Sequence record: NC_071007.1
Direction: 5' to 3' (one strand)
Length of the DNA stretch: 64,000 nucleotides
How positions within the stretch are numbered: position 1 is the stretch's first letter; each line of letters begins with the position of its first letter. The translations under genes and the position numbers were made by a program. The notes below the pieces were generated by a model. It was not told where the DNA came from. It saw only the letters and a program-made list of their open reading frames with translations, and ran no database searches. Shown piece after piece: positions 2,028-25,131 of the stretch.

Positions 2028-3116
2028 TTATCGCCCACCAAACAGTTTCAGAAGAGAAGCAAGGTCCAAGGAGGTATCTTTCTTAGCCGTTGCGGTAATA
2101 TTACGAATAGTGAAAGTCTCAGGCAGAACACTACCACTATTCCAGAAAGTAATCAGACCTTCACCATCATTAATAATGACAATGGTGTTAGCCAAAACTG
2201 CTTTACGAATACGAGGCATTCCAGTCTTATCAAATCGGAAACCATTTTCGCTTTCAATTTGTTTAGCTGTTTCAGCGGAAAGCACAATAGTATTTGCCAT
2301 GGTATTCATGGACATAACACCACTTGCCAGTGCAGCAGCACGATTTCGACTTTGACGATCTTGGGCTTCTTCATAGTAACCAGAAAGGTCATTAGCGCGA
2401 ATATTAAATTCACGTTTAATGATATCGGTCCCTTTAAGAAATTCAGGACGAGTCAACTCATCAGCACGATACATCATAACACGACCAAACCAACCGTCTT
2501 CAGGACGAGCTGCTTCGAACATGACTTTAAGATCGTTTGAACTCATAGGGACAGGAACTTCTTTAAAGTTCAGAGGGAAACAAACTTGGGTTTGACCAAT
2601 TTGGGTTTGAGCAGTAACAGTCCGACCCACTGCCAGTGCGGCATTAACTGTAATCTCACCAAGTTCCTTACCACCAAAATTAGCACTCTTACCATTTGTA
2701 GGACCGGCTTCTGACCCACTGATCAATTGTTTCTTAGCAAGTGCTTCAACACCCTGCAAAGAAAGAAACCCGCCAGTACGTCGGGGCTGAATAGAATCCA
2801 CCAGGCTACTGATTTTGATCCCTTCAATTTCACCTTGCATAGCAATGTGGGTCAAGGCATCTTTAATATCACGAAGCATGATAACTGTCAGTAAATCCTG
2901 CATGTAATCTGCATGAACAAGATCACGTTCGATTGCTACCATAGGTGCAACAGTAACTCGACCTGCCGATTGCGAAACAGACATTGTGTTAAACAGATTG
3001 TATGCTTTACCGGCCATTTTAACCGCTTTATCTACTGCATTAACGGTATCCCCGGTTTTACCTGCCGCTTTGGCAAGCTGAACAAGGAAACCGCCAAAGT
3101 TGATGACACTCAGCAT
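2028..3116 (-). CDS. Virion head protein (phiKZ gp89-like)
   Basis: 362-aa ORF with SD (aaggag) and QGVEA/SGSEA processing-like motifs; synteny. Confidence 0.5.
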   Translation of the reverse strand: MLSVINFGGFLVQLAKAAGKTGDTVNAVDKAVKMAGKAYNLFNTMSVSQSAGRVTVAPMVAIERDLVHADYMQDLLTVIMLRDIKDALTHIAMQGEIEGIKISSLVDSIQPRRTGGFLSLQGVEALAKKQLISGSEAGPTNGKSANFGGKELGEITVNAALAVGRTVTAQTQIGQTQVCFPLNFKEVPVPMSSNDLKVMFEAARPEDGWFGRVMMYRADELTRPEFLKGTDIIKREFNIRANDLSGYYEEAQDRQSRNRAAALASGVMSMNTMANTIVLSAETAKQIESENGFRFDKTGMPRIRKAVLANTIVIINDGEGLITFWNSGSVLPETFTIRNITATAKKDTSLDLASLLKLFGGR

Positions 3117-3141: not shown

Positions 3142-4215
3142 ATGAATGAACAAGAAAATGATTTTACAAATTATTCGGGAGAGACCATAGAAAAAAGAAA
3201 AGAGGTTTTTGATACCGCTTTAAGGGATCAAGGTTCTCCGGGTTACACGTCACCATTAATAAACTCTTTGAGGGGTTTTAGAATACTGGGGACGGGGCCG
3301 GCAATGATGCCGCTCTCGGATAACACCATAGGATTGAGCTTTGTAACAAGACCGCAACTCAATTTAACAGATGATAATGTAAGTCGATCTGAGAAACTTT
3401 GTAGTCTTTATGGGTGTGGACAATACAGCATTGGTGCCTATATACGTGGTATGTTAGATGAGCGCTGGGCCGCCGCCAACCAACCAGTTGCTCTGAATAA
3501 TAAAATTCCTTTTATACCGTGTCTAACCAGTTATCTAAAAACAAGTACTGGATTTGGTGATTTGCAAATGCAAATCCAAACTTCCGATCCTGGTATTCGT
3601 GATCAGGTTTATCAGCGTGTCGCTAGTAAATTGGAAGAAAACGGTTTATACACAATGTCGCAAACTTATTTTAATCCCAAGCCTGGTGTCATACCAGCAT
3701 TATTTCAGACATGGGAAGATTACATTTCGGAAGTAACTTCCGGTGATCGTAATTTAAGTCCTAGGGATTTTTATTTGTTTAGTAATCGGATTGATTACGA
3801 TTGCCGTATCTATCATTTAATCATGAATAAAGATGCGGAATACTTAGAGCATATTTTTGCTACAGTTCAATCTATTCCTAATACGTATCAAGCTGGTGCA
3901 TTAGCTAATATTGACAACACTCAAAATTCAATCAGAGCAGAAGGTCAAGATGACTTTAGTGTACAATTTAGTTCTGTTGGGATGCGTTTCAATGAACTTG
4001 GCTTGATCCAATCATTTAATGAACACAGTTTTTCTTATAATCCTAATCTTAGACCGGAACGGCGGGCAGGATATTATCGAATGTTAAAAACATCCGAATA
4101 TCAAGATTATGGATTTGGTGCATATCCATTACTTTTACCAATGACTGATGATCGCCGTAATCCAAATGGTGTTGGACGGTATGGTATCAAGCTCACCTGG
4201 TGGGTAGAAAAGTAA
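3142..4215 (+). CDS. Virion tail/baseplate protein (phiKZ gp88-like)
   Basis: 357-aa ORF, divergent from the head genes and directly upstream of the large baseplate gene; synteny only. Confidence 0.45.
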   Translation: MNEQENDFTNYSGETIEKRKEVFDTALRDQGSPGYTSPLINSLRGFRILGTGPAMMPLSDNTIGLSFVTRPQLNLTDDNVSRSEKLCSLYGCGQYSIGAYIRGMLDERWAAANQPVALNNKIPFIPCLTSYLKTSTGFGDLQMQIQTSDPGIRDQVYQRVASKLEENGLYTMSQTYFNPKPGVIPALFQTWEDYISEVTSGDRNLSPRDFYLFSNRIDYDCRIYHLIMNKDAEYLEHIFATVQSIPNTYQAGALANIDNTQNSIRAEGQDDFSVQFSSVGMRFNELGLIQSFNEHSFSYNPNLRPERRAGYYRMLKTSEYQDYGFGAYPLLLPMTDDRRNPNGVGRYGIKLTWWVEK

Positions 4216-7886: not shown

Positions 7887-9434
7887 TTACACCTTCATTG
7901 GGAGTCCAAGCTCCTTCAGTAAGTTGTTCATCGGAGTTTTGACTTGGGGAAGTTCTTTAAGAATCCTGACAACGTCAATGCTTTCTTGCTTCAAATCAAA
8001 TTCTGGATAATAGGCTTTTAATACCTTTGTATCATCAGGAAGTAAACGAGGAAGATTTAGTGAACCATCAGAATTTTTAGAAAAGAATTCTTGTTCATAA
8101 CCAGGTGTTGCTTCTTGATGTGCAAGGATAATTTTCTCGGCATCTTGGGTAACGTACGCCATCCCAAGGGTTTGGAGAGATGTAATCCATTTACTGATCG
8201 AAGCTGTGGTGATAGCACAACGCTGAAGAACATCAGAAATCAAATTAACAGATTCATTAAAGTTTGTAATAGCATTTGAGAATGCCATATAGGAACCGAT
8301 TAACCCTGAATGTTGGGGATACATCTGAACAACAGAATCCAGGACTTGAGCAAATTTATCATCTACCGCGTCTTTGAGATTTGAGTAATCAAAGCCGGTA
8401 ATACGATGATACTCATTTTCATTAACACGTTTGATGTAAGACTTTTGAAGTTCTTGATAAATATTAACGTGGTCTTCTGAGATCGCCTGCTTGGTTTGTT
8501 CTAAATTGGCTTTTAATGTTTCACTGATAACTTTAAAGGTAGTCTGGACACCCAGATCTTTAATTTCAATCTCATAAATCTGTTCAACCAACCGTTTTGC
8601 CATTTCAGCATATTGGGTCGGATCCAGATTTTCCATTACCAATTTATCCAAATCACTGGTAAATGCAATAACATCTGCTTCAGTCACATTCTTACTTTTA
8701 ACAATGTTTCTGAAATTATTGGTGATTCGCACATAGTTGTTTTTAACATTGCGGGACTTTTGACTACCCTCAATTAACAATTTATATGCTTTATCAATAT
8801 CTTCAGATGCTTTATTCATTGCATTGACTACATCACTCGCACTTTGCGCGCGATTCTTAATGATAGTCATTGCTTCTTTACCAGTCACACCTTTTGGAAG
8901 AGTTTCCATAAACTCATCTAAATTAAAGCTAACTGCTTCTGGTGTTCCACCAAACGCACGAATCATAAAGTTCCGCAGGAGAGGTTTCAATTTCTCCATG
9001 TGTTGTTCGGCGGCAGCAATTTCTTTTTCGGTTTTATTAAAACCAAACAATGATTTTAATTTGGTCAGCGCCCAATCAATAATGGCACCTAGCCATTTAC
9101 GAATTGCTTTGATGATTGTCACAAATCCTTCTTTCAATGTAGAAAGAAAAGACTCCCCACCCATACGAGCATTGTGTTTATCATAAACAGGGAGGAAACT
9201 TTCAGTTCCAGAGATTTTTAACGCGGAAAAGGATTCACGGTGTAACCGGCCTTTGCTAAAAAACTCTTTAGTAGAACGTTGAATAACTTTTAAAGCTTCC
9301 TGACCCGTTGTTTCATAAAGATCATCAAGGGAGATTAAATCTTCTCCCTCATCGTTTTTTGCAAGAACGGTGACTTTTTCACTTTCGCCATGGGGAGAAA
9401 GTTGAATGACACTTGAGAGTGTAACATCAGACAT
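7887..9434 (-). CDS. Head/ejection protein with prohead-protease-type sites (SPN3US gp47-like)
   Basis: Likely start ATG 9434 (SD ggag). Contains TGQEA, SGTES and GGESF followed by the amphipathic helix FLSTLKEGFVTIIKAIRKWLGAIIDW typical of phiKZ internal head proteins. Confidence 0.55.
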   Translation of the reverse strand: MSDVTLSSVIQLSPHGESEKVTVLAKNDEGEDLISLDDLYETTGQEALKVIQRSTKEFFSKGRLHRESFSALKISGTESFLPVYDKHNARMGGESFLSTLKEGFVTIIKAIRKWLGAIIDWALTKLKSLFGFNKTEKEIAAAEQHMEKLKPLLRNFMIRAFGGTPEAVSFNLDEFMETLPKGVTGKEAMTIIKNRAQSASDVVNAMNKASEDIDKAYKLLIEGSQKSRNVKNNYVRITNNFRNIVKSKNVTEADVIAFTSDLDKLVMENLDPTQYAEMAKRLVEQIYEIEIKDLGVQTTFKVISETLKANLEQTKQAISEDHVNIYQELQKSYIKRVNENEYHRITGFDYSNLKDAVDDKFAQVLDSVVQMYPQHSGLIGSYMAFSNAITNFNESVNLISDVLQRCAITTASISKWITSLQTLGMAYVTQDAEKIILAHQEATPGYEQEFFSKNSDGSLNLPRLLPDDTKVLKAYYPEFDLKQESIDVVRILKELPQVKTPMNNLLKELGLPMKV

Positions 9435-21448: not shown

Positions 21449-21791
21449 TAAAGTTTAAACCGTAAAAGGTTGGATCATGCCAAAGTGCATTGTAATGTTT
21501 CTGAATTTCTTCATAAACCAATTGACAGTTTAGTTTATCCAAAGGTCCAAGATTGTTGTAAAGTTCCTGCACACTCGTCATTGCATCATTATAGTCACCT
21601 GGTGCAGAGACAAGTGTTTGTCCTAATGAATATATTAAAATTTCTAGCAATACGATCTGGGGAGTATCAACGGCTGTAACAAATTTTGGGTTAATCATTA
21701 ACCAAGCAGTTGTTGTTACATTTGGGACTTGTACGGGTTTATCGTCATAAACCCCAACTCCAATTGCGTTTAATTCATTTTCATCAAACAT
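21348..21791 (-). CDS. Acidic hypothetical protein
   Basis: Likely start ATG 21791 (MFDENEL), overlapping the upstream stop. Confidence 0.55.
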   Translation of the reverse strand: MFDENELNAIGVGVYDDKPVQVPNVTTTAWLMINPKFVTAVDTPQIVLLEILIYSLGQTLVSAPGDYNDAMTSVQELYNNLGPLDKLNCQLVYEEIQKHYNALWHDPTFYGLNFSDAGFYKYVTTIYDTTTRFVLFADPDFKIGYWE

Positions 21792-22275
21792 AATTAATAT
21801 CCGGTGGAAGACCAACAATGTTGGTATAATTAACATAATTGTCAATTGTTGCGTATATACCCATTAGTGTACTATTAGCATCTGGGGACAATCCTTCCTG
21901 TAACGCTATAATAATCGTTTTAGGTTTAATTTGGTACACACACATGGAAATTCCTTCTGACGTTGTTATAACATCATTTAAGAGTGCTCCTTGATTGACC
22001 ATGATATCTCTTAAACCTTCATTACATATACTGTATTCTTTTTCAAAGTTTGCGACACTTCCATAACAATCGGCCAGCATTTCACCCATTGCAAAACTTG
22101 CAATGTCCAATGAGAAAACATTATCGATAGATGTATCCGGATTATCTCGGCTATGGGCAATTAATGTACATATCCCACTACCTATTACATGAAGAAGGTC
22201 CTCATCTTCAATATCAATGTAAAATGAAAAAGTTAATATATTTGGTAGTGTAAAATTCTCTAATAATTTTTCCAT
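21784..22275 (-). CDS. Acidic hypothetical protein
   Basis: 163-aa ORF with SD aagg. Confidence 0.55.
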   Translation of the reverse strand: MEKLLENFTLPNILTFSFYIDIEDEDLLHVIGSGICTLIAHSRDNPDTSIDNVFSLDIASFAMGEMLADCYGSVANFEKEYSICNEGLRDIMVNQGALLNDVITTSEGISMCVYQIKPKTIIIALQEGLSPDANSTLMGIYATIDNYVNYTNIVGLPPDINYV

Positions 22276-22293
22276 GGTAAACCTTGGGATAGT

Positions 22294-22324
22294 TGACTTT
22301 AGGAACCATAGGCTCCTAAAGTCA
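22294..22324 (-). terminator. Hairpin terminator (probably the original helicase terminator)
   Basis: tgactttagga...tcctaaagtca, immediately after the displaced helicase 3'-end copy. Confidence 0.65.
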
Positions 22325-22337
22325 GTTTTAATTTAAG

Positions 22338-22409
22338 TTAAACAGTTACACCACTATCAATCGGTTCAAAAACTTTCATCTTTTTAGTAAAGATACCTTT
22401 TCTTTTCCT
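22338..22409 (-). repeat. Displaced duplicate of the last 23 codons + stop of the SF2 helicase gene
   Basis: Translates RKRKGIFTKKMKVFEPIDSGVTV*, versus helicase C-terminus RKRKGIFTKKMKTFEPIDSGVTV* (23488..23559); 17 nt differences in 69, all synonymous except one codon. Confidence 0.92.
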
Positions 22410-23430
22410 TAGAAAAAAGATGCTGTTTTTGTTCATCAGTTAAACCATTTGGATATTTCGAACCCTCTTCTTTTGAGACTCTTGTCCAAATACAACCTTT
22501 GTGGAATCTTATCTTTTTATTTATATTGTCGGCTATTCCACTGGGTGAAAACCCATATTTTTCTAATTCTTTACTACCGTATAAAACAAACTGCTGATTT
22601 TTACAAGGACCTTCTGAGATAATAGTCCCGACTGTTGCTAACACGTTAGATCTTCCATTAGATGGGTCTCTCAGTATTTTTAAATCTTTGTTTGAAATAC
22701 CTAATTCTTTATTTTGGACTTCTTCTGCATCAACCTTTTCCCATAAACAATTAAGGTATAAATTTCCGGTATTAATGGCGTCATAGACTTCACCATTATT
22801 AAACCCGTATTTTCTTAAGCTTGGAATTTGATAAAAATAATATTCTTTTTCAAACAAAGGTCCAGGGAGTTTAACAATACATTTAAAATACGTCGATTTC
22901 TTAACACCTGACCCAATGGCTTTAAGTATATTTTCTTTTTGAGTTACCCATTCAAGATTTGATTTAAGATTATGGGTTTTGTTATCATTTTTATGGTTGA
23001 CAACAAGTTTCTTTTTAAAACTTTTCAAGTGTTTTGGGATAGGGATAAATGTGCAAGCTACTACTCGATGTGCTTTGAATCTTTCAAAACCATTTTTGGT
23101 TTTTAAATCAACTGCAAGATAACCTTTACCATTGTTATATCCAATTGTAACACTTAAATCTTTTCTACCACTAGAAATTAAACGCCCACTGGTACTTATT
23201 AATTTTGAAAAATCAACTATTGTTTTAGATTCTTTATTTTTCCCGCCACCGTATTTACTCCCAAAATGTTCTGGGAAATCCCACCCGACATAATTAGGAT
23301 TTTTCTTTCTTTGTTTTTCAATGTATTCATGTCGCAACTGAACACGTTGGTCATAAGTAAGTATATCCCAATCAAAATTAAGAACGATTGAAATAGGTTT
23401 ATAAAATAATAATCTTTCATCTATTTTCAT
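22384..23430 (-). mobile_element. Free-standing HNH homing endonuclease
   Basis: HRVVACTFIP...VVNHKNDNKTHNLKSNLEWVTQKEN (HNH_3-type core) and two C-terminal DNA-binding-like repeats; SD taaggt; inserted at the helicase 3' end. Confidence 0.9.
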
Positions 23431-23445
23431 GACATAACCTTAGAG

Positions 23446-23479
23446 CTAACTTACCAAGACAGCTGTCTTGGTAAGTTAG
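23446..23479 (-). terminator. 34-bp perfect palindrome between helicase and HNH genes
   Basis: ctaacttaccaagacag|ctgtcttggtaagttag. Confidence 0.75.
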
Positions 23480-23487
23480 TATTTAAT

Positions 23488-25020
23488 TTAAACTGTAACG
23501 CCGCTGTCTATAGGTTCAAATGTTTTCATTTTCTTAGTGAAAATACCTTTTCTCTTGCGCCCGTAAGCCACCTGTTTTGGCTCGTCCACACAAACAAAGT
23601 AAACAAAGATTGGATCAAGATCACTCCACCATTCATCAATTGGTCTAGTTCTACCAACCATTTGATCATTACGTTGTGAAGATGATACAGCTATAGGTGA
23701 AAATACCGCATAAAGCTTTTTAATATCTTTACCTGTTCCACAGCTTCCAGGTGTTGTTACGACATTTCGATGTTCTCGATAGGCCGTTGGATTCTTTTTG
23801 TTTGTAACTGAGTTAAAAACGATAGAATCAAGTTCTGGGTAGTCTTGAAGTAATCGTTTATTAAATCTTTCACAAAACTCAATTGTCGCAAAGAACCACA
23901 TCGACTTCTGACCTTCTCGATACTCATCCATGTAAAACATGTCATAAGCACCTTTGAGCATTTGATAATAACGCTCAAACACATCTGCTCTTTTTAGGAT
24001 ACCTTGTTCAAATTTAACATGAGAATATCCCCCAAAGCCTTTTGTATTAATTCTGTATTCCCATAACTTCATTCGATGGAAATAAGAAATTACACGAATA
24101 TACTGAGTATACTCAGGTGGTTTTAAATAAGAGGTATGTGGGAAGATTTGCGAATAAATACCATTGATAAACTCATCATCACCTTTTAAGGTTGCTGAAA
24201 GAATAATGGTTTTATTCACGTTACCGTACATTAAGCTATTGTAAACAGAATAAATTGATTCATGAGCTTCATCAATAATTCTGGTACCAATTCCAAGGTC
24301 ACTATAGATTTGATCGAGTGTTGGCAGAGTTGGTTCTTCCTTACACTTTTTCAGATAAATGTCAATTTTACTTAATGGTAAAATAATGACTTTTGGATCA
24401 CAAATGCCGTTCTTAATATTTTCATGGACTTGTTGAACATTAAGGATATCAGCAACTAAAATATCTTGAGGAGAGATATTGTAAAACTCCCCCATAGCTT
24501 TAATCCAAATATCTACGTATCTTGGAAGAACAGTAATTAAGACACGTTCGCCTAAGTTTTTAGCTGTATATAGCGCGCAGAAGCTCTTCCCACCGCCTGT
24601 TGTCATATTGTTTACAACTAACGAAAGTGGTCCTCCCATGAAATCACAATACTCTTCTTGCATTTCATTACGAGGTTTAATCTTGTCATTTAGAAAAGGA
24701 ATATTAACTTTTTTAGCTTCTATTTTCTTTTCATCTTCAATTCTAATTCTTGAGCGCTTGTATCCGCTACTTTCCATAATCCTAAGCAATTCTTCTAGCT
24801 TAGAGGGATTAAAGCGTAATTCTGTTTCATTGTGATTAAAGCGGGCATAAACTTGTTTTACTTCCCACTTAAATGTTCCGAATAATTCACCCGGAACCTT
24901 CTGAAATCGAAAGAAGTTCCTTTTGCAAAAAGGTCTTAACACTTGTCTAACGAGTTCAGGCTTGAAGTCCGTTAGGCGGACATAGGTACTCGCCTTATAG
25001 ACTGTCAACGTAGTTCTCAT
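23488..25020 (-). CDS. Superfamily 2 (DExH) helicase (phiKZ gp75-like)
   Basis: Walker A TTGGGKS, motif II DEAH, motif III SAT, motif VI QMVGRTR; likely start ATG 25020. Confidence 0.9.
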   Translation of the reverse strand: MRTTLTVYKASTYVRLTDFKPELVRQVLRPFCKRNFFRFQKVPGELFGTFKWEVKQVYARFNHNETELRFNPSKLEELLRIMESSGYKRSRIRIEDEKKIEAKKVNIPFLNDKIKPRNEMQEEYCDFMGGPLSLVVNNMTTGGGKSFCALYTAKNLGERVLITVLPRYVDIWIKAMGEFYNISPQDILVADILNVQQVHENIKNGICDPKVIILPLSKIDIYLKKCKEEPTLPTLDQIYSDLGIGTRIIDEAHESIYSVYNSLMYGNVNKTIILSATLKGDDEFINGIYSQIFPHTSYLKPPEYTQYIRVISYFHRMKLWEYRINTKGFGGYSHVKFEQGILKRADVFERYYQMLKGAYDMFYMDEYREGQKSMWFFATIEFCERFNKRLLQDYPELDSIVFNSVTNKKNPTAYREHRNVVTTPGSCGTGKDIKKLYAVFSPIAVSSSQRNDQMVGRTRPIDEWWSDLDPIFVYFVCVDEPKQVAYGRKRKGIFTKKMKTFEPIDSGVTV

Positions 25021-25131
25021 ACGAAACCTCAACTGAACACATAGGAATTTAAATTAGACCCTTGATTTTACTGGGTTCAAACTATTATTGTCTAATGAAT
25101 GCTCATTCCAGTGTTTTTATAACCATTTTGA

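Follow-up and report, generated by a model that had tools for sequence, protein, structure and literature searches.

In Aeromonas phage ZPAH34 (OM810292), a phiKZ-like jumbo phage of 234.5 kb in the genus Chaoshanvirus, the 3' end of an essential-looking helicase gene probably harbours an intron-less and intein-less homing-endonuclease cassette. The window, a stretch of 64,000 nucleotides from sequence record NC_071007.1 in which all positions below are counted, is 100% identical to ZPAH34 over the region concerned. Its minus strand carries all the features discussed, in the order helicase body, functional copy of the helicase end (F), hairpin T1, HNH endonuclease gene, orphan copy of the helicase end (O), hairpin T2 and next gene. 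The helicase gene, of superfamily 2 (SF2; ResIII/DEAD-type) and 510 amino acids (aa), occupies 23488..25020 according to the list of open reading frames (ORFs), profile matches and the annotated coding sequence (CDS) in OM810292. Its last 23 codons and stop constitute F (23488..23559, RKRKGIFTKKMKTFEPIDSGVTV before the stop), contiguous with the helicase ORF, and the same 23 codons and stop recur as O (22338..22409, RKRKGIFTKKMKVFEPIDSGVTV before the stop), outside any long ORF in the helicase frame. Between the copies lie T1 (23446..23479), on the cassette side between the helicase stop and the HNH start, and a free-standing gene for an I-HmuI-like HNH endonuclease of 348 aa (22384..23430), identified by phrog_59, phmmer and Foldseek. 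T2 (22294..22324), recognized by its fold and by the identity of the adjoining spacer, is the native hairpin that directly follows the helicase in relatives without the HNH gene. The mobile unit would consist of F, T1 and the HNH gene, followed by O, the native T2 and the next gene; because such a unit brings a complete in-frame end, stop and hairpin, the helicase stays intact despite an element inside its CDS.

F and O are 1150 nt apart, on either side of the HNH gene. The sequence-only reading had reported a helicase end present twice, and we confirm this together with the coordinates on the minus strand: 22 of 23 aa are the same, and 17 of 72 nt differ, spread over 14 codons, 13 of them synonymous and one with a T/V exchange. 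In a repeat search the pair grows to 86 nt (22321-22406 and 23471-23556; 77% identity), the second-longest repeat pair in the 7-kb region being 41 nt, and comparison of the 64-kb window with itself (tblastx, E<=1e-4) revealed no other internal protein-level repeat. When the observed nucleotide differences were placed at random in 200,000 trials, 17 substitutions produced a mean of 11 aa changes, and none of the 200,000 trials gave one or fewer. The two copies in a second carrier, phage CF8, encode 23 of 23 identical aa with 13 nt differences, all 11 changed codons being synonymous where about 9 aa changes are expected at random, and again 0 of 200,000 trials reached the observed zero, so that the synonymous excess has P<5e-6 in either phage. 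That the differences are almost all synonymous argues that both copies derive from working genes and diverged under selection in the helicase frame. Between the ZPAH34 and CF8 orphans, 10 of 12 changed codons are synonymous (7 of 9 within codons 1-18), and codon 8 is clade-specific in both copies, being ACT in ZPAH34 and its relatives AerS_266 and L012, and GAG in CF8 and its relative L013. The contrast of a GC-rich functional copy with an AT-rich orphan holds in ZPAH34, where the GC content at third codon positions is 0.35 in F and 0.22 in O, and is reversed in CF8 (0.39 in F, 0.48 in O); it is not general, and GC-rich recoding was dropped as a mark of an imported copy.

The HNH gene is a separate ORF that starts at its own ATG, 57 nt past the helicase stop, and its TAA (22384..22386) lies within O in a different frame, as had been proposed; the last ~8 HNH codons and the stop are inside O, in a frame 1 nt upstream of O's helicase frame. 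Each copy had also been given its own terminator hairpin. Both folds are strong (T1, -23 kcal/mol, z -5.5; T2, -21.3 kcal/mol, z -4.9), but by the criteria of a terminator scan no U-tract follows either of them on the coding strand, so we use 'terminator' as a putative label. T1 is homologous to the hairpin of the CF8 cassette, with which it has an ACCAAG...CTTGGT core in common. On the opposite (plus) strand, a T-rich run follows the T1 hairpin (23445..23480) with a terminator-like score. A sigma-70 promoter scan was uninformative because 7 sites were found where 6.8 are expected and because such phages transcribe with RNA polymerases of their own. The idea that the duplicated unit reached the ribosome-binding site and start codon of the next gene was abandoned: the resemblance in ZPAH34, AAGGTT..CATG, is treated as chance because it is absent in CF8 and the HNH N-terminus MKIDERL is kept in paralogues at other sites.

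Intron-free homing by an HNH-type enzyme, the central proposal of the sequence-only reading, agrees with the protein's relationships. The protein matches phrog_59, 'HNH endonuclease' (1.3e-27), and a phmmer search aligned it to residues 38-117 of PDB 1U3E, I-HmuI (2.7e-7). Its predicted structure (mean pLDDT, the per-residue confidence of the model, 81) retrieved 1u3e_M from the PDB with Foldseek (E 4.5e-6, probability 1.00, template-modelling score for the target 0.47), the next match being at E 0.1; I-HmuI is thus the only significant PDB match both by sequence and by fold. The two enzymes have the core HR..A...F......LVV(D/N)HK..NK..NL..NL.WVTQK.N in common, and residues H121, R122, N145, H146, K147, N158 and N167 are invariant or nearly so among 12 relatives. 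No Rfam intron family was found within 21700..25100. The N-terminal part and the C-terminal half of the protein match no solved structure; conservation within the family, compared over paralogues from different sites, is highest in residues ~1-57, and in the model residues 181-238 and 265-323 form two tandem beta-beta-alpha-alpha-beta modules that are probably DNA-binding repeats.

Relatives were reached through protein searches and are GenBank phages and Logan/ENA contigs only, since pattern searches came back empty: a back-translated pattern for the helicase found no relative in IMG/VR, and a degenerate DNA pattern for the KMKxFEPIDSGVTV end with its stop found none in viral_contigs or metagenome_contigs. 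In the record labels used here, L001 is AerS_266, L002 CF8, L003 ZPAH34, L010 ACP1 and L027 PS1, and L012 (ERR11172747_323) and L013 are Logan contigs. The cassette occupies an identical junction in ZPAH34 and in CF8, which is about 71% identical and has an orthologous HNH gene and both copies; no further HNH orthologue was found at the helicase site, relatives beyond CF8 being <=52% identical and at other sites. The HNH gene is absent from the helicase site in AerS_266, L012, L013, L015, pAEv1810, PS1, AVP1, AhC3_1 and ACP1. These genomes have a single helicase end, then a T2-type hairpin, then the same downstream gene (21784..22275 in the window, from the ORF list and relatives), which encodes 163 aa with no assigned function, adjoins the helicase directly in all relatives without the HNH gene, is 95.7% identical in nucleotide sequence to its L012 counterpart and would serve as the right-hand homology arm. 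Identity to ZPAH34 is 86% for AerS_266 and 93-97% for L012; L013 is CF8-like, and the empty sites include those of five phages that are more distant. The prediction that HNH-less relatives would continue from the helicase into the hairpin at 22294 is borne out by every one of them, the 62-nt spacer after the orphan being identical at 62 of 62 positions in L012 and 59 of 62 in AerS_266.

The companion prediction, that their helicase ends would lie nearer the orphan, did not hold in the coding part for the closest relatives. Over codons 1-18, L012 matches F of ZPAH34 at 12 informative sites and O at 1, whereas over codons 19-24 it matches F at none and O at 4; the switch at codons 18/19 (23503..23508 in F, 22353..22358 in O), an apparent exchange point defined by these informative sites, has a Fisher p=0.002 with a breakpoint chosen post hoc and falls in a 2-nt window of identity. 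Compared with the CF8 copies, L013 matches the functional one at 10 informative sites and the orphan at 2, and turns to orphan-side sequence (T2) just past the stop codon. AerS_266 is mixed, with 7 informative sites matching F and 9 matching O of ZPAH34. A match of HNH-less relatives to the functional copy, which the sequence-only reading had named as evidence against itself, is thus what L012 and L013 display in the coding part, and not in the hairpin and spacer. Its assignment of O as the original and F as the import fares likewise: the hairpin, the spacer and the orphan-like codons 19-24 of L012 agree with it, and codons 1-18 of L012 and the F-like end of L013 do not.

Two accounts of how the cassette moves have to be weighed against these chimeric ends. 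Under the first, a real possibility that falls short of probable, the cassette would be exactly F, T1 and the HNH gene inserted at the RKRKG junction, with O the untouched original and F imported and recoded for immunity; L012 and L013 would then be secondary products, arising either when F x O recombination removed the cassette or when break repair copied F and left the HNH gene behind, and would have kept an immune F-type sequence. An orphan junction at the same codon in both carriers is what this account expects, as is the intactness of all 23 O codons, which would place the whole of O recently in a working gene. The retention of the F-type 5' part in both chimeric empty sites is likewise expected if that part gives immunity; AerS_266 is slightly nearer O (9 differences vs 11 from F; 6 vs 11 when the two junction codons are excluded), and the fungal precedent discussed below works in the same way. 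Set against this, F and L012 differ at 6 of 72 nt, which equals the background of the flanking helicase (92-93% identity), so F looks orthologous rather than imported, and the same applies to the functional copy of CF8 and L013 (5 of 72 nt, against a background of 93%). That F and O have clade-specific codons in common would not be expected of an F that moves from lineage to lineage along with the cassette, and a 2-nt identity window is an unlikely spot for a simple homologous deletion. AerS_266 was dropped as an arbiter of the native copy: its 9 and 11 differences stand where about 10 are expected from background.

Under the second account, which is possible but rather unlikely, the duplication was made once, long ago, and a composite block comprising the 3' part of F, T1, the HNH gene and the 5' part of O now moves by ordinary double-strand-break repair, entering L012-like naive genomes by a left crossover in the helicase or F and a right crossover in O or T2. 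In ZPAH34, F codons 1-18 and O codons 19-24 with T2 would be native, the cut would lie near codons 18/19 (GAC|AGT), and everything between, from F codon 19 through T1 and the HNH gene to O codon 18, would have been imported. Exactly such a pattern is seen against L012, whose identity to ZPAH34 steps at the repeat from about 92% over the last 100 helicase nt to 100% over nt 101-200 counted from the orphan start, which take in the hairpin, the spacer and the beginning of the next gene, and a mirror pattern is found between ACP1 and PS1 (see below), the HNH-proximal parts of both copies being foreign and the distal parts native. If the cut always fell at 18/19, though, O codons 1-18 would never be renewed and should have decayed since ZPAH34 and CF8 split, yet the changes between the two orphans there are mostly synonymous, and the exchange between CF8 and L013 is placed at the stop codon instead of codons 18/19. 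Either the boundaries between native and foreign sequence lie inside or at the end of the repeat and not at its 5' edge, as would follow because L012 and L013 match F in the coding part, or the empty sites arose secondarily by recombination. Both kinds of event may plausibly have taken place, against a backdrop of frequent recombination. Identity between ZPAH34 and L012 swings from 85% to 100% per 100 nt over the 8-kb locus, and this patchiness points to frequent recombination among such phages.

The age of the parts bears on whether the cassette is still mobile. The HNH proteins of ZPAH34 and CF8 are 63% identical, with a synonymous divergence (dS) of 1.58 and a ratio of nonsynonymous to synonymous divergence (dN/dS) of 0.17; the two genes split long ago and have remained constrained. 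The orphans, with 0-1 aa changes over about 52 nonsynonymous sites, are estimated to have spent < ~0.06-0.09 neutral substitutions per site as non-coding DNA, and dS to the nearest empty relatives, at 0.38-0.40, is above that estimate. The orphans thus look young and the HNH genes old, a combination that argues for recurrent re-invasion; because they look young and both copies carry the clade-specific codon 8, the orphans would have been renewed within each clade. One might instead take the nuclease for a resident, domesticated and no longer mobile, with the repeat a relic of one ancient insertion and the gene lost from HNH-less relatives. The HNH genes do diverge roughly in step with their hosts at the same site, and the low dN/dS is also expected of a domesticated gene, but we regard this alternative as improbable: an ancient relic should be scrambled and the orphan is intact, the orphans carry clade-specific codons, the family occurs at varying sites in several copies per genome as is typical of mobile homing endonuclease genes (HEGs), and divergence spikes beside its paralogues.

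Least probable, and very unlikely, is that the orphan is functional, either translated, for example as an HNH-helicase-tail frameshift fusion, or selected as a homology arm and hence intact. Its amino acid sequence is nearly perfectly conserved in two phages, and in each of them its helicase frame lies one nucleotide downstream of the HNH frame. No ORF of >=40 aa is present in the orphan's helicase frame in the ORF list, however, and renewal by re-invasion covers the same data without a new function. The frameshift fusion was rejected, as no slippery sequence at the overlap is common to ZPAH34 (CTTTTTTCTAAGG) and CF8 (ATATTTCCGCAAG).

Several observations weigh against the homing-cassette interpretation or blur it. 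The two closest empty sites resemble F, not O, in coding sequence, so a single clean invasion that left O untouched fits badly. The four copies in ZPAH34 and CF8 are about equidistant from one another (13-20 differences), and selection on the orphans, in place of renewal, could in principle account for their being intact. The sample, at two cassette-bearing genomes, three close empty sites and a 72-nt repeat, makes phylogenetic inference weak. About 13 of 18 tested members of the HNH family have no flanking duplication, which is therefore not obligatory for the family. The HNH protein scores 22.8 bits against Pfam HNH_3 (PF13392), under the gathering cut-off of 24.8; because phrog_59 matches so strongly, this shortfall is put down to divergence, not to absence of the domain.

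We nevertheless favour a homing cassette, for which cleavage, the position of the cut, immunity and the direction of each historical event are what we infer. In a co-infection with a cassette-free relative, the HNH enzyme would nick or cut the single helicase end of the naive genome, and the break would be repaired from the cassette-bearing genome, with the helicase body as left arm and O, T2 and the downstream gene as right arm. Neither F nor O of the carrier would rebuild the naive site, F having synonymous changes and O having HNH sequence instead of helicase on its 5' side. As each copy is homologous to the single copy of the recipient, crossovers would fall inside the repeat, which would also be a substrate for precise loss of the cassette. 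The outcome would be a cycle of gain, loss and re-invasion that leaves chimeric empty sites in related genomes.

The gene that carries the cassette is labelled 'putative terminase large subunit' in GenBank (23488..25020) and is mislabelled, since profile searches point to an SF2 DNA/RNA helicase: it matches phrog_16, DNA helicase, at 4.9e-35 and Pfam ResIII weakly, and has 145 homologues at E<=1e-30 in related jumbo phages. Orthologues in other records are labelled 'DarB-like antirestriction' or 'transcript termination protein', and the mechanically called helicase ORF begins at a TTG, at 25032. In some relatives the helicase contains an intein at the P-loop (Walker A), the corresponding site in ZPAH34 being 24585/24586 (GGGK|SFCALY). 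The AerS_266 helicase (L001 2580-5168) has 862 aa and an intein with a LAGLIDADG_3 domain, that of L012 (L012 4001-6226) has 741 aa and a faint Hint match, and the helicases of L013 (4001-6145), PS1 and ACP1 (~713 aa) and of AhC3_1 (743 aa) also bear inteins. Those of ZPAH34, CF8, pAEv1810 and AVP1 are intein-free, and among the close relatives sampled intein and 3'-end HNH cassette never occur together in one genome.

Related phages have 2-8 copies of the HNH family per genome at varying sites, and three of these, ACP1_0134, PS1_0055 and PS1_0063, are flanked by mirror-image duplications, in which the 5' end of the downstream gene is repeated. The duplication around ACP1_0134 (L010 2389-2487 vs 3588-3683) retains 27 of 30 aa over a 30-codon match with mostly synonymous differences, that around PS1_0055 (L027 1726-1845 vs 2963-3082) 31 of 40 aa, and that around PS1_0063 (L027 7316-7351 vs 8451-8486) comprises 12 aa. 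The orphan of ACP1 is identical to the naive PS1 sequence in its promoter and first 27 nt, whereas the functional gene has 63% and 82% identity in its first two 100-nt windows beside the HNH gene and 95-98% thereafter, so that divergence is confined to ~200 nt of the functional gene beside the HNH gene. At the ZPAH34 site the only signal of this sort is the step in identity at the repeat. The tiny 'hypothetical' ORF ACP1_0133, whose stop overlaps the start of ACP1_0134, represents the orphaned 5' end of the 699-aa gene downstream, together with its native promoter region; PS1_0054 is the orphan start of PS1_0056, across PS1_0055, and upstream of PS1_0063 there is an orphan start of PS1_0064, 12 codons long. 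For annotation, 'hypothetical' ORFs beside HNH genes such as ACP1_0133 and PS1_0054 are orphan gene ends. A second HNH paralogue lies ~2 kb downstream of the helicase site in CF8 (CF8_0080, L002 7542-8228) and L013 (8459-9496), where it precedes the virion RNA polymerase gene; it is absent in ZPAH34, L012 and AerS_266, and no flank duplication was found around the L013 gene.

The core of the earlier interpretation holds, in an arrangement known from fungal mitochondria that we have not found described for phages in a limited search. The fungal precedent for a replacement C-terminus, which the sequence-only reading had invoked, is real: mobile ORFs (mORFs) insert a foreign C-terminus in atp6 of Allomyces macrogynus and in atp6, atp9, cox2 and nad3 of Glomus sp. 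(PMC3630166), and mORFs with an inserted C-terminus are found in cob and atp6 of Endoconidiophora (PMC6279837). As there, the host gene in ZPAH34 and, with the same layout, CF8 reads without a frame break into an inserted C-terminal copy, behind which come the endonuclease ORF and a displaced C*-terminus; the copies are alike in protein and diverged in DNA, and close relatives are element-free. The fungal endonuclease families named in PMC3630166 and PMC6279837 are LAGLIDADG and GIY-YIG, unlike the I-HmuI-like HNH enzyme here, and a lytic jumbo phage takes the place of the organelle as host. Relatives of Glomus and Allomyces clearly resemble the native C* more than the inserted copy, whereas the closest empty sites of ZPAH34 match the functional copy in coding sequence; unlike the fungal cases, too, ZPAH34 has a hairpin duplicated along with the coding end, and its HNH family includes mirror-image 5'-end duplications. 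Because it combines an HNH-type enzyme with a phage genome, the ZPAH34 cassette is an analogue of the fungal mORFs by mechanism, not a member of their family.

T4-like phages offer the classic cases of intronless homing by free-standing endonucleases (the Seg and Mob families); such elements lie in intergenic positions or divide a gene so that it yields two polypeptides, as reportedly in Aeh1 nrdA. Like the T4 Seg and Mob genes and the HEGs of ICP1, which mark recombination boundaries (PMC10448857), the ZPAH34 gene encodes a free-standing endonuclease of a lytic phage, is variably present among relatives and lies at a boundary of sequence exchange beside a gene that is conserved and probably essential. 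A duplicated target-gene end in phages was found described neither in PMC10448857 nor elsewhere in our limited literature search. I-HmuI (PDB 1U3E), an HNH homing nickase of 174 aa encoded in a group I intron of Bacillus phage SPO1, has the catalytic core in common with the ZPAH34 enzyme, which, in contrast, has 348 aa, no intron, a family-conserved N-terminal region of ~100 aa and the two tandem C-terminal modules. In PhiPA3, the intron-encoded homing endonuclease gp210 has been demonstrated to mediate interference between co-infecting jumbo phages (PMC11620839). The resemblance to gp210 lies in a homing-type endonuclease of a phiKZ-like jumbo phage and, for ZPAH34 by prediction, an essential gene of a relative as target; unlike gp210, the ZPAH34 enzyme is not intron-encoded, and any interference by it would, on this analogy, be pure speculation. 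The mention of a phage nucleus in the sequence-only reading is reasonable background because relatives of ZPAH34 encode chimallin (by sequence search and the AerS_266 paper).

The routes by which elements are known to enter a phage CDS without killing the gene are introns, inteins and gene splitting. The ZPAH34 locus would represent a fourth, in which the element brings a spare gene end, a solution documented so far mainly in fungal mitochondria. As a compact and testable system it comprises two carriers, three close empty sites whose chimeric ends are informative, and the 5'-end mirror cases. We suggest, tentatively and as something that may well prove otherwise, that the HNH family constitutes an undescribed class of homing 'gene-end replacement' cassettes in nucleus-forming Aeromonas jumbo phages, which would act on 3' or 5' ends, bring a spare, differently spelled end, renew the orphan as a homology arm and serve as a weapon against cassette-free relatives during co-infection in the phage nucleus. 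The locus may be of use for following the homing cycle of gain and loss, the boundaries of co-conversion and, possibly, phage-phage competition in chimalliviruses.

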